Shown in pieces: positions 12,634 through 31,197 of a stretch of 64,000 nt of DNA (positions are counted from its first letter, which is position 1; the number at the start of each line of letters is the position of its first letter). A program made the translations under genes and the position numbers. A model generated the notes under the pieces. The model saw nothing but the letters and a program-made list of their open reading frames with translations. It was not told the origin of the DNA and made no database searches. The stretch is from the sequence record PP942979.1; one strand, given 5' to 3'.

Positions 12634-13404
12634 ATGAGCAACGTTGATACAACAATGCCTGAAGGTAAGTGGGAGTTCAATGAGCCAGTTGCTGCTGTGT
12701 TTGACAACATGCTGCAAAACTCAATCCCATCTTATGATCGTATGCGTGACCTGACGTATCGTTTAGGTCGTCAGTTTGTTACACCGGGATCGGCCATCGT
12801 TGATTTAGGTGCGAGCCTGGGCCGTGCGATTGAGCCTTTCGCAAGAGAGTTCGGTCAGTATCAGTGGCATCATTGCCCTCACTCGGATGGGCCTGATACA
12901 GAGACTGGTAATCACTACAGCCTGTACGAGATCGCTCCTGCAATGCGTGAGCGTTTGATGACTAACGAGTTGTTGAACAGCGTGAACGCAAAGCTGGAAA
13001 AGGAATCTCTGGTCGATGTAGACACCTTCCGCTTTAGTGGTCAAGTTGATTGCTCACTGATTCTGAGCGTGTTGACTCTCCAGTTCACCCCTATCGAACA
13101 TCGCCAGCATATTCTGGAAAAGGTATATGACTCGCTACAGAAAGGCGGCGCGTTCATCCTGATTGAGAAAGTGCTGGGTGATGACAACTACCTGGACCGT
13201 CTGCTGGTAGATACCTACTATCAGATGAAGGGCGACAACGGCTACTCGCAGGAAAGCATTGCGACGAAACGTAAGTCACTTGAGGGCGTACTCGTTCCAG
13301 TGAAGGCCGCATGGAACGAAGAACTGCTGCGTAAGGCTGGCTTCGACCGCGTAGAGTGCTTCTACCGTGATCTGAACTTCGCAGGTTGGATTGCGATCAA
13401 GTAA
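12634..13404 (+). CDS. cmoA: CmoA-like carboxy-S-adenosyl-L-methionine synthase
   Basis: WEFNEPVAAVFDNMLQNSIPSY, DLGASLG, TLQF, GGAFILIEK, GYSQESIATKRKSLEGV parallel E. coli CmoA ([22 protein letters not shown]...GYSELEISQKRSMLENV); Arg199 equivalent retained (13270-13272). Confidence 0.88.
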   Translation: MSNVDTTMPEGKWEFNEPVAAVFDNMLQNSIPSYDRMRDLTYRLGRQFVTPGSAIVDLGASLGRAIEPFAREFGQYQWHHCPHSDGPDTETGNHYSLYEIAPAMRERLMTNELLNSVNAKLEKESLVDVDTFRFSGQVDCSLILSVLTLQFTPIEHRQHILEKVYDSLQKGGAFILIEKVLGDDNYLDRLLVDTYYQMKGDNGYSQESIATKRKSLEGVLVPVKAAWNEELLRKAGFDRVECFYRDLNFAGWIAIK

Positions 13405-13408
13405 CCGT

Positions 13409-13437
13409 GTGGGTGGCTTCGGCTGCCCACTGCTTTT
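13409..13437 (+). terminator. rho-independent terminator (interrupted U-tract)
   Basis: GTGGGTGGC-TTCG-GCTGCCCAC-TGCTTTT. Confidence 0.6.
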
Positions 13438-13449
13438 GAGGGAACAACC

Positions 13450-14316
13450 ATGGCTAATGTACGCCAAGAACGCTGCGCACGAATGATACGCGAGTCACTA
13501 ATCGCAGAAATAAAAAAGGCTCGCTCTAAACGTCCTTACGTCTTCCTCAGTGGCGGCGTAGATTCAAACTGTATTCTGTTTGCTGCACTGGCTGCTGGCT
13601 GCAAGCCAATCACACTGAGCTTTCATATGGAAGGCGTTAACAGTCGTGACTTCCGTGCGGCACAAGCTATCGCTCAGGAGTTTAATCTTGAGCTAATCGA
13701 AGTCGTTCTTCCCAACAGCTATGAGAAGTTGAAGAAAGATGTGCTGCTCATGGCCAAGCGTTACGCCTGTATTCAGAAGAACGAATTTGAATGTTCATGG
13801 CCGATGCTCTACAGCTTCTTCCACGTTCGCAATCACGCGGCAGAGAATGGCATCAAGAATCCTGTGACGTTTACCGGACAGGGCGCCGACCTGATGTATC
13901 TCAGTAGCAAGAAGGCGAGCATTCACTATAAAGATCGTCCAGACGAATGGCGTAAAGAAGGCCGCGCTAACCCACATCGTACTCAGGGCCGTATCTTACC
14001 TGTGATGGCGCGTGACGCTGGTGTGCGTAACATCAAGCCGTGGGACAGCGAAGAAATCCTGGAAGCGTTTCTCGGCACAAGCTGGGAAGACGTTAACAAG
14101 CCTCGTCAGAAAGAGCCGTCTCGTATGGCTTTCGAAGAAGACTTCAAACGTATTCGCGTATACAACCATCAGAACTTCCAACTCGGTGACACAGGCATCG
14201 CAGAGCATTTTGAAAAGCTGCTGGCCGATCCTGAGATGAATCCTGATCTTAAATACAAAAGCGTCGTCGGTGTTTACGGTGAGCTTGCCCGTAAGTATCA
14301 GGGAATCGAATCATGA
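13450..14316 (+). CDS. asparagine-synthetase-like ATP-dependent amide ligase (synthetase domain only)
   Basis: PP-loop VFLSGGVDS, TGQGADLMY (AsnB SGEGADELF), NFQLGDTG; no N-terminal Ntn glutaminase domain. Confidence 0.8.
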   Translation: MANVRQERCARMIRESLIAEIKKARSKRPYVFLSGGVDSNCILFAALAAGCKPITLSFHMEGVNSRDFRAAQAIAQEFNLELIEVVLPNSYEKLKKDVLLMAKRYACIQKNEFECSWPMLYSFFHVRNHAAENGIKNPVTFTGQGADLMYLSSKKASIHYKDRPDEWRKEGRANPHRTQGRILPVMARDAGVRNIKPWDSEEILEAFLGTSWEDVNKPRQKEPSRMAFEEDFKRIRVYNHQNFQLGDTGIAEHFEKLLADPEMNPDLKYKSVVGVYGELARKYQGIES

Positions 14317-14924
14317 TTCATATCATTGATGGTGGTGTTGGTTGTGATTACGTTTCTGAAAAGCTGCGTGACGCTGGAATCAACTGTCGTACTCATGCGC
14401 CAAACAACCCACGCGTTCGCGCTGCATACGCACCTTACGCCTCGCTGTCCATGGGCTTTAGCGTAGAAGAAATTGAGAAGCATATCGGTAACGTGCTTGG
14501 CACATATCGTGGCCTGTTTCTGATTAGCAGTTACATCGGCTCGCTGGTGGCACGTAGCATGATTGATCAATGCGGCCAAAGCCATAACATCATTTACTGC
14601 GATGACTTCAAGTGCGGTTCTCTGCCTGTCGTTGCTTCTTCTATTTCTGTAAACACCTACAAGAAGCAACGGCAACTCGGACGTATTGCTGGCCGTCTCA
14701 AACACTTTGACTTTGACCACGAATTTATTATTGCTGACAAGGCAGTGCGATTTGCGGCAGGCTCAGAGTTTGATGAACATGAAGCGCGTAGCGAACTGAA
14801 CAACCATGCGAAGTTCCTGTCGAGTCCGTCCATGATTGTTGCAGCACACAAACTCGGTGTGCGTAGCAGCATGTATCATAACTATGCAGGGCTGGTGAAA
14901 GAGTTCATTGAGAATCGCCAGTAG
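14313..14924 (+). CDS. hypothetical protein, weak resemblance to the glutamate racemase (MurI) N-terminal domain
   Basis: MIHIIDGGVG ~ MIGVFDSGVG, APYASLS ~ VPYGTKS; catalytic Cys absent; ATGA-coupled to the amide ligase. Confidence 0.45.
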   Translation: MIHIIDGGVGCDYVSEKLRDAGINCRTHAPNNPRVRAAYAPYASLSMGFSVEEIEKHIGNVLGTYRGLFLISSYIGSLVARSMIDQCGQSHNIIYCDDFKCGSLPVVASSISVNTYKKQRQLGRIAGRLKHFDFDHEFIIADKAVRFAAGSEFDEHEARSELNNHAKFLSSPSMIVAAHKLGVRSSMYHNYAGLVKEFIENRQ

Positions 14925-15213: not shown

Positions 15214-15669
15214 ATGAATCTTTTCTCTATTTTAAAACAGCAAGTGAAGAAAGCGCTGTCTACCGAAGCGAACCACGAACCAGAAATTCGTGCTTTGTTT
15301 GACTGGCGTTACTCAGTTGAGATCAAAGGTCAGATGTATATCGTCGGTAAGACAGGAGCAAACACCTGCTTCTATATCGAGCCGGGAACGTCTGAACCTA
15401 TCGCCTGTTACCCCGATGCGTTACTGGACAAGATCGACCAGTGGGGTTCAGGCAAGTACGTGTCGTATGCGATCTACTTCAAACGCTTCGAAAGCCCTGT
15501 TGCTGAGAACATCAAAAGTCTCGAAAAGGCAATGACAGGTAAACCGAAGACGTTTAAGAAAGGTTACTTCATCTGTGGCGTTACGCCGAAAGGCAAGCGC
15601 GTCAAGCTCTATCGTCTTCAACAGGGACTGAGCGGAATGCAGTGGGTAGCAGTGGAACCTAAAAAGTAA
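15214..15669 (+). CDS. hypothetical protein (151 aa)
   Basis: GAGGA RBS. Confidence 0.7.
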   Translation: MNLFSILKQQVKKALSTEANHEPEIRALFDWRYSVEIKGQMYIVGKTGANTCFYIEPGTSEPIACYPDALLDKIDQWGSGKYVSYAIYFKRFESPVAENIKSLEKAMTGKPKTFKKGYFICGVTPKGKRVKLYRLQQGLSGMQWVAVEPKK

Positions 15670-28355: not shown

Positions 28356-29066
28356 ATGGCAAAAACTGCTATCAAAACAAAGGACGGAAAGAAGAAAAAG
28401 AATGATGGGCTAAAGTTCGAGTTGAATAAACTCAGCTCCGTCAATCAATTAAAAGGCGCAGCGTATAACCCGCGTTTCATTACAGACAGTCGCCTGAAAG
28501 CACTCGAAGGTTCTTTGGGTAGCTTCGGCGACTTGTCTGGTATCGTGTTCAACAACAACATCAAATCTGGTGTGTTGATCTCAGGCCACCAGCGCTTGAA
28601 GTCAATCGAAGGCTGGAAGACTCGTATCGAGGTCCAGAAGTCTGTTGATAAGCACGGCACTATCGGCCTGGGTTATATTCACGCAACGCATCCGAAGAAG
28701 TCTGATAAGGTGATCAGCATTCCTCTGCGTATTGTGAACTGGACCGATAAGAAAGCAGAGTACGCTGCAAACATCGCGGCGAACGCCCACGGCGGTGAAT
28801 TCGATAACAAGAAACTCGCCAAGCTGGTTGAGCAACTCGACCTCAACACAATCAAGCCGCAGTTGCTTGGCCTTGACCCGTTAGAGATTCGCGGTCTGCA
28901 AGCCAAGCTGAAAGTTCAGGCTGTTGTTCAGGACGAGAAACGTGCTGGCAAGACAACTGGCCAGATGAACGGCAGTACCGGTAAGTTCAATGAGTACAAC
29001 CCTGATGATGTGGGTGAAGCTCTGAACTGCACCTGCCCGCGTTGTGGATTCAAGTTCGAGGGATAA
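28356..29066 (+). CDS. ParB/Sulfiredoxin N-terminal domain protein with a C-terminal Zn ribbon
   Basis: AAYNPR, LEGSLGSFG, LISGHQRL, ANIAANAHGGEFD, CTCPRCGFKF. Confidence 0.8.
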   Translation: MAKTAIKTKDGKKKKNDGLKFELNKLSSVNQLKGAAYNPRFITDSRLKALEGSLGSFGDLSGIVFNNNIKSGVLISGHQRLKSIEGWKTRIEVQKSVDKHGTIGLGYIHATHPKKSDKVISIPLRIVNWTDKKAEYAANIAANAHGGEFDNKKLAKLVEQLDLNTIKPQLLGLDPLEIRGLQAKLKVQAVVQDEKRAGKTTGQMNGSTGKFNEYNPDDVGEALNCTCPRCGFKFEG

Positions 29067-29067
29067 T

Positions 29068-31197
29068 ATGATCATCAAGCCGCCTACTATGAAGGAAATC
29101 AACAAGCTGGATAAACCCTGGCGTGGTATGAGTTTCTTCGCAGGTTGCGGTGGGTCTTCGACCGGTCACAAGATGGCCGGTATCGACATTGTGTTGAGCA
29201 ACGAGTTTGTTGACTCAGCACGAGAGTCCTACGAAGCGAACCATCCGACAACTAAAGTGCTGCCTCATGACATTCGCCGCTTAGACCCAGGCAAGCTGTT
29301 GCGCTTCGCTGGTCTGAACAAAGGCGAACTGGATTTACTTGACGGTAGTCCTCCTTGCTTCACCGAAGACACGATCATTCATACAGCAGACGGCATGAAG
29401 TTCATTTCGGACATGAACGTCGGCGATAGAGCAATGACCAGTGTCGGGCAGTATCATCCCGTGTACGACACGATGGTGCGACCTTACGTCGGCACGATGC
29501 ACAAAATCGAAACACTGATCAGTAGCAACAAAGCAACGCCTGAGCACCCGTTCTTTATCAGACGTCCACTTGCGGCGGGCGGTTACTCTGAACCATTCTG
29601 GTGTGATGCTAAAGACGTGCAGGAAGGCGATCTGCTCGGTACACCTCGTGTTACGCCTGACCAGCCTGCTGATGTGTACCACAATCAGATGAATCAATTG
29701 CCGAAGATGATTCGTCAGTGGGTAAGCATTCCTGAGTTCTGGTGGATGGTAGGTCACTGGTGTGATCGTGGTTCAATCGAAACTATCGGTGGCATTGAAG
29801 CAGTTAGCTTCGAGTCGCATACCAGTATTGAAAACGCGATGATTGAGCAGGCGTTTGACGCGCTTAAACTCAGCAGCCTGAATCGCATCGAAACAATGAC
29901 AGCGCAACGTAGAACGTTCCGTACTGTTATTGATGTTGAGCTGGTGCAGTTTCTGCGCCGCTTTATCAGTCACGGCAACAACACGTTCTCTCGTCGTCTG
30001 CCTGCCATGTTGTTCCACATCAATGCGGAACTGAAACAGCAATTCATTCTGGGCTGTGCTGGCATGGATTATGTGACTGCTATGGGCACAGGCATTGCTA
30101 TTACTTCTGCAAGCAAGCGCTTCCTGCTTGAACTGAATTACCTGTGCTGCTCGGCATTCAATCGTCCCCTGTTCGACGGACTGACTTGGGGCGATCTGTA
30201 TTTCGGTAGTTCGTTAACGCCTCGTGAACGTAACAGTGCGCGTGAGCATATCGGCTACCTGTTCTTGCAGGACGAGCACAACTTCTTCCATGAGTTCAGC
30301 AAAGAAGACCCGCATCTCTGGACAGAAGTGATTGAGAACCTCGCGTATCAAGCAACCTGTGACGTCTATAACTTCTCTGTCGAAGTGGACGAGACTTATG
30401 TGGCGAACGGTGTTGTTGTTCACAACTGCAAAGGCTTCTCTACTGCTGGCGTGAAAGAAGAAGGCTGGGGCAAAGAAGTTAAGTACAGTGATAACAAGTA
30501 TCAGCAGGTTGATGACCTGTTCGATCAGTATTGTCGTATGTTGAAAGGCATGATGCCGAAAGTGTTCACTGCGGAAAACGTTAGTGGTCTTGTTAAGGGT
30601 GCCTCGAAAGGTTACTTCCTTGAGATCATGCGAACGTTTGACGAGATTGGCTATTACGTCCGAGCGCCGCTGCTTAATGCTGCATGGCTTGGCGTGCCTC
30701 AGTCTCGTGAGCGTATCATCTTTATGGGTGTGCGCAAAGACGTAGCACACGCTCTCGGCTATAAGAGCAATCAGGCTGCTGTGCCTGATGTAGTGCCGTG
30801 CGATACAATGGCGTTCCTTGCAGATGCCCTGCCTCACATTCAGCGGTATAAGTCCACGAAGAAGGATATCATCACATACCTTCCTGCGATGAACGGACCG
30901 ATGCCGACGATCACTGCGGCTGATGCTATCGCGTATGAGACAGCCCGTTTCTCGTCTGCTGGGTTCGTCGAGGACAACAAAGGTCATCGTCGTAAGTTGA
31001 CCATCGACGAACTGAAAGTTGTTTCCGGCCTGCCGTCAGACTATAAACTGAAAGGCAAGTTTGAAGAACAGTGGGAGCGACTCGGTCGTATCTGTGTTCC
31101 GGCAATGACACAGGCTGCGTCGAAAGCTCTTATCGAACACGTCCTGCTGCCTTATGCTAAGAAGCGTAAGAAGAAGCCTGGCGAAATCTTTAAGTAA
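29068..31197 (+). CDS. C5-cytosine DNA methyltransferase-fold enzyme with intein; candidate cytosine carboxymethyltransferase
   Basis: Motif I FFAGCGG, motif IV GSPP|CKGFS, motif VI AENVSG, motif VIII GVPQSRERIIF, motif IX RKLTIDE; motif X reads LGRICVP instead of xGN(A/S)V. Confidence 0.88.
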   Translation: MIIKPPTMKEINKLDKPWRGMSFFAGCGGSSTGHKMAGIDIVLSNEFVDSARESYEANHPTTKVLPHDIRRLDPGKLLRFAGLNKGELDLLDGSPPCFTEDTIIHTADGMKFISDMNVGDRAMTSVGQYHPVYDTMVRPYVGTMHKIETLISSNKATPEHPFFIRRPLAAGGYSEPFWCDAKDVQEGDLLGTPRVTPDQPADVYHNQMNQLPKMIRQWVSIPEFWWMVGHWCDRGSIETIGGIEAVSFESHTSIENAMIEQAFDALKLSSLNRIETMTAQRRTFRTVIDVELVQFLRRFISHGNNTFSRRLPAMLFHINAELKQQFILGCAGMDYVTAMGTGIAITSASKRFLLELNYLCCSAFNRPLFDGLTWGDLYFGSSLTPRERNSAREHIGYLFLQDEHNFFHEFSKEDPHLWTEVIENLAYQATCDVYNFSVEVDETYVANGVVVHNCKGFSTAGVKEEGWGKEVKYSDNKYQQVDDLFDQYCRMLKGMMPKVFTAENVSGLVKGASKGYFLEIMRTFDEIGYYVRAPLLNAAWLGVPQSRERIIFMGVRKDVAHALGYKSNQAAVPDVVPCDTMAFLADALPHIQRYKSTKKDIITYLPAMNGPMPTITAADAIAYETARFSSAGFVEDNKGHRRKLTIDELKVVSGLPSDYKLKGKFEEQWERLGRICVPAMTQAASKALIEHVLLPYAKKRKKKPGEIFK
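29356..30426 (+). mobile_element. intein (357 aa) with a degenerate LAGLIDADG-type endonuclease region
   Basis: Starts CFTEDT, block B KATPEHPF, block F VYNFSV..DETYVANGVVVHN, +1 residue Cys; EN blocks MVGHWCDRG and FILGCAGMD. Confidence 0.92.

Follow-up and report, generated by a model that had tools for sequence, protein, structure and literature searches.

A stand-alone AsnB-type ligase of Erwinia phage phB78 as the probable last enzyme of a cytosine hypermodification pathway

A three-enzyme system for the hypermodification of cytosine has been described for Synechococcus phage S-B43 (Yang et al., Nat Commun 2025, December 2025; PMC12783734). In this system CmoA produces carboxy-SAM, and CmoX, a C5-methyltransferase homologue whose hallmarks are an SPPC motif and an Arg350 replacing the motif-X Asn, puts a carboxymethyl group on C5 of those DNA cytosines that lie in GC sites, giving 5cxmC (PMC12783734). 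The third enzyme, SpCmoY, is a glutaminase-less asparagine-synthetase homologue that uses ATP and glycine to convert 5cxmC-DNA to 5gcxmC; ligation of glycine was demonstrated with dsDNA in vitro, on expression in E. coli and for the DNA of virions (PMC12783734). The same study found ParBc domains beside CmoX, a glutaminase domain in the second-largest ligase cluster, and certain ligase clusters with distinct pocket residues, whose amines are not known (PMC12783734).

Here we analysed a window of 64,000 nt, the opening 64 kb of the 261.8-kb genome of the jumbo phage phB78 of Erwinia (genus Alexandravirus); the window is 100% identical to record PP942979.1, with equal coordinates. At its centre of interest is a gene that the record names 'putative asparagine synthase' and that we identify as a homologue of CmoY. 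The system as such is already published (PMC12783734); what phB78 adds to it is a dispersed layout, a CmoX interrupted by an intein, and a ligase of an uncharacterised clade.

The gene at 13450–14316 and the CmoY family

The gene and the motifs of its product are located as follows.

13450..14316, + strand: CmoY homologue, a putative stand-alone AsnB-type PP-loop ATP-dependent amide ligase (288 aa, ATG start; assigned by Pfam, homology and fold)
13549..13566, + strand: PP-loop SGGVDS, the ATP pyrophosphatase motif (aa 34–39)
13876..13890, + strand: GQGAD motif (aa 143–147; Gly143 and Asp147 conserved, Gln144 at the position of AsnB Glu348 by hhalign and column counts)
14095..14124, + strand: NKPRQKEPSR motif with the invariant Lys221

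The preliminary description of this DNA had recognized an AsnB synthetase domain standing alone, with its SGGVDS and GxGAD motifs intact and without a glutaminase. Both motifs are indeed intact, and the open frame, hhalign and a scan of the whole genome agree that the domain stands alone. The protein matches Pfam Asn_synthase (PF00733) over aa 25–173 with an E-value of 8e-9, which is over the cut-off, and a family profile aligned with hhalign pairs aa 11–235 of phB78 CmoY with residues 210–444 of E. coli AsnB, i.e. with the synthetase domain only (probability 95.7%). The open frame reaches about 15 codons further upstream (303 aa in all) to an in-frame stop that is the stop codon of cmoA; since this extension is too short and ends at cmoA, the missing glutaminase is genuine and not the consequence of a mis-called start. 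That cmoY is a real gene and more than a chance ORF is seen from its AF2 model (pLDDT 93), from the large family to which it belongs, and from indel-free, intact copies in contigs assembled from independent runs on plant material, soil and wastewater. Identical pieces are also contained in one RNA-library run, as an assembled contig that documents presence only and is not proof of transcription.

A Foldseek search with the model returned beta-lactam synthetase, carbapenam synthetase, AsnB and human ASNS as the top matches, all over the whole length and with TMq values of 0.67–0.74, and searching the PDB by sequence with the phB78 protein alone gave insignificant matches only (E 0.4–0.8). In the remote structure and representative searches the CmoY of phage S-B05 was left out of the input. 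The best structural matches, beta-lactam and carbapenam synthetase (PDB 1MC1, 1Q19), are AsnB-family enzymes that adenylate a carboxylate without glutamine; unlike the phB78 protein they keep a vestigial N-terminal domain, and they close an intramolecular amide (lactam) on small molecules. E. coli AsnB (PDB 1CT9) has in common with phB78 CmoY the C-terminal synthetase fold (TMq 0.70), the PP-loop, an aligned Lys in its EKxxLR motif and, as we would predict for the phage enzyme, acyl-adenylate chemistry. It differs in possessing an Ntn glutaminase, in carrying Glu348 where phB78 has Gln, and in overall sequence (~16–23% identity); also, its substrate is aspartate, whereas that of phB78 CmoY would be a DNA base, going by SpCmoY.

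An exhaustive profile search yielded 1908 family representatives at the 50% identity level (E<=1e-3), 319 of them at E<=1e-30, and nearly all of these representatives are stand-alone proteins of 260–300 aa. Two CmoY proteins among the best 150 representatives (P0089 and P0128) have a weak UDG-superfamily domain at the C-terminus. By tblastn of the phage collection, CmoY homologues are present in 58 records; CmoA is carried by 70, and these are mostly the same phages. Across 166 family sequences the invariant positions are S34, G36, D38, S39, D67, K110, E114, G143, D147, R168, P218 and K221; the four PP-loop residues among them are conserved in 96–98% of the sequences and Lys221 in all 166. K110 and E114, together with C115, are family-specific invariants and have no counterpart in AsnB. 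By contrast to such fixed positions, the one equivalent to AsnB Glu348 is hypervariable family-wide (Gln in phB78, His in the Yersinia and PaBG proteins, Ile in S-B05), which might reflect a tuning of the nucleophile site to different amines.

Two basic stretches, KKARSKR (aa 22–28) and KPRQKEPSR (aa 217–225), had previously been taken for surface patches that suit a nucleic-acid substrate. The latter is in fact the best-conserved motif of the family, and as its Lys221 aligns with the Lys of the AsnB motif EKhiLRecF it is an active-site motif rather than a generic basic patch, while KKARSKR shows no conservation across the family. What stands of the argument is the basic character of the phB78 protein (pI 8.95) and of the family as a whole (median 8.96); however, the characterised SpCmoY is acidic (pI 5.8), so that basicity is not required.

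phB78 CmoY shares 35% identity with S-B05 CmoY over 240 aa (E 7e-39); S-B05 is the sister phage of S-B43, and the CmoY proteins of the two give equal tblastn scores. Like phB78 CmoY, SpCmoY (UniProt A0A514ABJ0) consists of a stand-alone AsnB-type domain of ~270–290 aa with the PP-loop and the invariant Lys, and in both phages the gene lies adjacent to that for CmoA, with CmoX encoded in the same genome. The two ligases nevertheless belong to separate clades: a FastTree phylogeny of 166 members places phB78 CmoY in a strongly supported clade of 10 members with the Yersinia phage proteins, adjoining the PaBG group and far from the SpCmoY clade (the deep branches of the tree are uncertain). The two differ at positions conserved within each clade, for example Q179, D247 and Y276 in phB78, which correspond to Gly, a gap and a variable residue, respectively, in the SpCmoY clade. 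Given the separate clade and these clade-specific residues, glycine cannot be assumed as the amine of the phB78 enzyme. The glutaminase-bearing CmoY-like ligases of the A0A7T0Q3R0 cluster (PMC12783734) resemble phB78 CmoY in their synthetase domain and their association with CmoA and CmoX, but keep the N-terminal glutamine-hydrolysing domain that the phB78 protein is without.

Pathway partners in phB78 and in other genomes

The remaining parts of a Cmo pathway are encoded on the same strand within the window.

12634..13404, + strand: CmoA homologue, putative carboxy-SAM synthase (256 aa; TIGR00740 3e-41, PRK15451 4e-30, phrog_4752 1e-81)
13409..13430, + strand: G+C-rich hairpin between cmoA and cmoY with a 9 bp stem and a UUCG loop, followed by a weak T tract and then a GAGG ribosome-binding site (consensus match only)
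28356..29066, + strand: ParB-like (ParBc) protein immediately upstream of CmoX (phrog_620 6e-32)
29068..31197, + strand: CmoX homologue, putative DNA cytosine C5-carboxymethyltransferase (709-aa precursor; PF00145 6e-38 in two pieces)
29356..30426, + strand: intein of 357 aa within CmoX (Pfam Intein_splicing/Hint_2 and an alignment gap; begins with CFTEDT and ends with VVVHN, followed by Cys)

The position of the ligase gene next to cmoA, as originally noted, is borne out by a CmoA homologue that ends 45 bp upstream. Its match to TIGR00740 is under the equivalog cut-off, and it is 28% identical (E 5e-26) to the CmoA of S-B05, the orthologue of the characterised S-B43 enzyme. The hairpin between the two genes may serve as a partial terminator or as an RNA-stability element.

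Scanned with Pfam, the complete phB78 record has a single C5-methyltransferase, the CmoX homologue at 29068–31197. Its motif X carries Arg674 (nt 31087–31089) in place of the usual Asn, and in an alignment with S-B05 CmoX and PaBG Dcm the phB78 ERLGR stands opposite the ERVGR of S-B05, with the Arg at position 350 by count. The intein sits exactly between Pro96 of the SPP and the catalytic Cys, and its predicted splicing would restore GSPPC; because it lies right before the catalytic residue, splicing is expected to be needed for CmoX activity. The same intein-split open frame of 723 aa is found in Dickeya phage AD1, and the Yersinia phage and metagenomic contig L027 each have a similar one. 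While the S-B43 genes are contiguous, those of phB78 are dispersed, with cmoX not adjacent to cmoY but 15 kb away. The ParB-like protein encoded directly upstream of CmoX is 43% identical to the product of a ParB-like gene beside the CmoX of PaBG. In the 262-kb phB78 genome we found no gene for CmoB, TGT/DpdA, a class-II (GATase_7) or class-I GATase, or a second Asn_synthase. These absences exclude cmo5U formation on tRNA, a pathway via deazaguanine and a glutaminase partner encoded by the phage. The suggestion that a partner protein supplies the amine finds no counterpart among the glutaminases for which the genome was scanned.

The association of the three enzymes recurs in other phages, in varying order: Dcm-CmoA-ORF-AsnS in the Pseudomonas jumbo phage PaBG, and CmoA-AsnS-Dcm in Synechococcus phages S-B05 and S-B43 and likewise in Staphylococcus phage vB-SscS-F1. 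In Yersinia phage fHe-Yen9-02 the genes for CmoA and an AsnS-like protein are adjacent, and an intein-split C5-methyltransferase lies ~13 kb off. Among nine metagenomic contigs that were reached via homologues of CmoY or of the 151-aa ORF described below, a C5-methyltransferase with ER.GR, CmoA and CmoY are each present in eight. In addition, the best 150 of the 1908 representatives include four natural fusions (P0024, P0032, P0063 and P0154; 608–701 aa) of an N-terminal C5-methyltransferase, i.e. CmoX, to a C-terminal CmoY; all of them have SPPC and the motif-X Arg, in the form ER.GR in three cases and ERLAR in one. These fusions, together with the linkage on contigs, provide independent support for a DNA substrate.

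Two metagenomic contigs depart from this pattern. On L020 (4300–7751), the genes around that for the CmoY homologue P0013 encode a class-V aminotransferase, a PALP-like protein and a protein weakly similar to thymidylate synthase, and no C5-methyltransferase is found on this 7.8-kb contig, which may represent a different pyrimidine hypermodification route. On L026 (98–4980), an arginase-family gene, CmoX, a short DUF1611 gene and CmoA occur and CmoY was not detected; this hints at other ways to decorate 5cxmC or to supply amines.

Proposed function and competing readings

On the combined evidence of homology, fold, motif conservation, the presence of all pathway parts, linkage and natural fusions, phB78 CmoY is probably the last enzyme of a three-enzyme cytosine hypermodification pathway that acts on the phage's own DNA. 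We infer its activity, substrate and role from analogy with the chemistry of the AsnB family and from the SpCmoY experiments. CmoA (12634–13404) would convert SAM and prephenate to carboxy-SAM, and CmoX (29068–31197), active once its intein is spliced out, would transfer the carboxymethyl group to C5 of DNA cytosine. CmoY would then bind ATP at the PP-loop and adenylate the carboxylate of 5-carboxymethylcytosine, and attack of a small free amine on the acyl-adenylate would give an amide-linked base adduct with release of AMP and PPi. Since CmoY has no glutaminase domain and phB78 no gene for one, the cell pool would provide the amine, be it glycine or another amino acid, as in S-B43, or an amine of another kind. 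The modification would probably serve to protect the phage DNA against host nucleases. The initial proposal of carboxymethylated DNA as the substrate, with an amine other than glutamine-derived ammonia, is supported by what has been demonstrated for the homologue SpCmoY and by the other pathway parts present in phB78. Points that weigh against it are the distance of 15 kb to cmoX, the dependence of CmoX on splicing, and the separate clade of the ligase; also, a literature search found no paper that reports modified DNA in Alexandravirus phages.

Glycine is a possible amine for the phB78 enzyme, and free ammonia would be the main alternative to it: the same enzyme class would act on the same DNA substrate, with the product being 5-carbamoylmethylcytosine. 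AsnB-type synthetase domains are able to use free ammonia, and the phB78 cassette, unlike those of its relatives, comes without an accessory amine-making enzyme, both of which favour this reading. A plain amide is also plausible in some phages given the glutaminase domain in the second-largest ligase cluster of the published set (PMC12783734). However, the sole characterised member without a glutaminase, SpCmoY, uses glycine, and the hypervariable position held by Gln in phB78 looks more like amine tuning than like a conserved ammonia site, so that we regard free ammonia as rather unlikely.

The other readings concern the substrate or the enzyme class itself. In bacteria CmoA belongs to a tRNA pathway, in which CmoB is the tRNA carboxymethyltransferase, and databases name the phage gene 'tRNA methyltransferase'; CmoA and CmoY might accordingly be thought to act on RNA, by amidation of a carboxymethyl(oxy)uridine in tRNA of the host or the phage. 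This is very improbable, as phB78 is devoid of CmoB but encodes a homologue of DNA C5-methyltransferases that carries the Cx-SAM-binding Arg, CmoY occurs naturally fused to such DNA methyltransferases, and SpCmoY works on dsDNA. That the gene is an auxiliary metabolic gene for a true ammonia-dependent asparagine synthetase, as the Pfam Asn_synthase match and the GenBank product names would have it, we judge even less credible: the protein scores 29.9 bits against the asparagine synthetase equivalog TIGR01536, far from the cut-off of 267.1, AsnB Glu348 is replaced, the invariant residues K110, E114 and C115 are foreign to AsnB, and the strict linkage is with CmoA and CmoX and not with amino-acid metabolism. 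The least probable reading of all is a QueC-like enzyme of the 7-deazaguanine DNA modification pathway, to which only weak matches point (Pfam QueC, 2e-5, and phrog_1550, QueC, 3e-11). These are confined to the PP-loop region, the QueC equivalog TIGR00364 gives 22.8 bits with a cut-off of 150.3, the genome has no TGT/DpdA, and the whole-length fold is AsnB-type, not QueC.

With phB78 CmoY read as a DNA hypermodification ligase, the names 'asparagine synthase' and 'tRNA methyltransferase' borne by the corresponding genes in about 50 jumbo phages of Erwinia and Dickeya, in PaBG and in further phages would be mis-annotations of parts of a DNA hypermodification system. Modified DNA bears on host range, on resistance to restriction and CRISPR and on sequencing, and with respect to phage therapy, some Alexandravirus phages are under study for phage cocktails against fire blight.

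Ligase exchange among related jumbo phages and the downstream reading frames

Two reading frames downstream of cmoY enter the comparison with related phages.

14313..14924, + strand: 203-aa ORF, whose ATG overlaps the stop codon of cmoY (ATGA)
15214..15669, + strand: 151-aa protein, unannotated, recurrent inside or beside Cmo clusters by the context of its homologues

Between phB78 and Dickeya phage AD1 (L002, 2710–5409) the flanking genes are 75–97% and CmoA 83% identical, and the ligases only 25% (E 2e-29). The AD1 ligase, which we call type B, has a PP-loop that reads SSGLDG and groups with the SpCmoY clade in the FastTree phylogeny. This type-B AsnS-like protein, shared by AD1, Alexandra and most pEa_SNUABM phages, belongs to the same family as the phB78 ligase (type A) and occupies the same slot between CmoA and the 203-aa ORF. 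It comes with DUF1611, whereas type A stands alone: in AD1 an additional DUF1611 gene lies ahead of the ligase, and in pEa_SNUABM_1 (L024, 435–5312) DUF1611 is joined by a PLP protein of the alanine-racemase fold (Ala_racemase_N) and a 420-aa protein of unknown function. A third type of ligase (type C), followed by a 2OG-Fe(II) oxygenase, is found in Yoloswag (L015, 3089–5676) and Sen-NF; outside Alexandravirus, it takes up this slot in Erwinia jumbo phages related to the genus (Yoloswag). Judged by these comparisons, it is the ligase alone that is non-orthologously replaced within Alexandravirus, the putative handle-making genes being constant and the decorating cassette exchanged. At this one slot, related jumbo phages of Erwinia, Dickeya and Yersinia appear to have at least three non-orthologous ligase cassettes for the decoration of the 5cxmC handle and, if this is true, ligase swapping would diversify the adduct in an arms race. 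CmoA of phB78 is 85% identical to that of Yersinia phage fHe-Yen9-02 (L005), while the flanking genes are 28–59% identical, which suggests either that the module is strongly constrained or that it was exchanged recently.

Neither Pfam nor PHROG has a family for the 151-aa ORF, its profile found no match in the PDB or the Atlas, and the published description of the system does not mention it (PMC12783734). A homologue is located between CmoA and CmoY in PaBG, and homologues directly beside CmoA are found on seven metagenomic contigs of six distinct lineages (26–35% identity), two of which were reached through a CmoY homologue and five through homologues of the ORF itself; the loci examined of S-B05, Staphylococcus phage F1 and Sen-NF do not contain it. 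Its context makes the 151-aa protein a candidate fourth component of the Cmo system. The swapped cassettes and this conserved candidate partner point to further chemistry beyond that of the 2025 paper. It is conceivable, and we put it forward tentatively as one joint proposal, that the phB78/Yersinia clade attaches an amine other than glycine, giving an undescribed hypermodification, that Alexandravirus keeps the 5cxmC handle and swaps the ligase cassette, and that the 151-aa protein is the fourth component.

A different ORF of the Yersinia phage had been considered as a glutamate racemase from a motif resemblance seen by eye, and Pfam gave no support for this. The 203-aa ORF of phB78 has no Pfam or PHROG family and a poor AF2 model (pLDDT 42), and the Atlas yields weak alpha/beta-hydrolase leads only. 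By tblastn it is restricted to Alexandravirus-like phages and a distant Yersinia homologue, and an ORF of 203 aa downstream of CmoY in PaBG has no detectable homology to it. It was considered as a CmoY-specific partner; however, it is 84% identical in AD1 despite the swapped CmoY, which argues against such a role.
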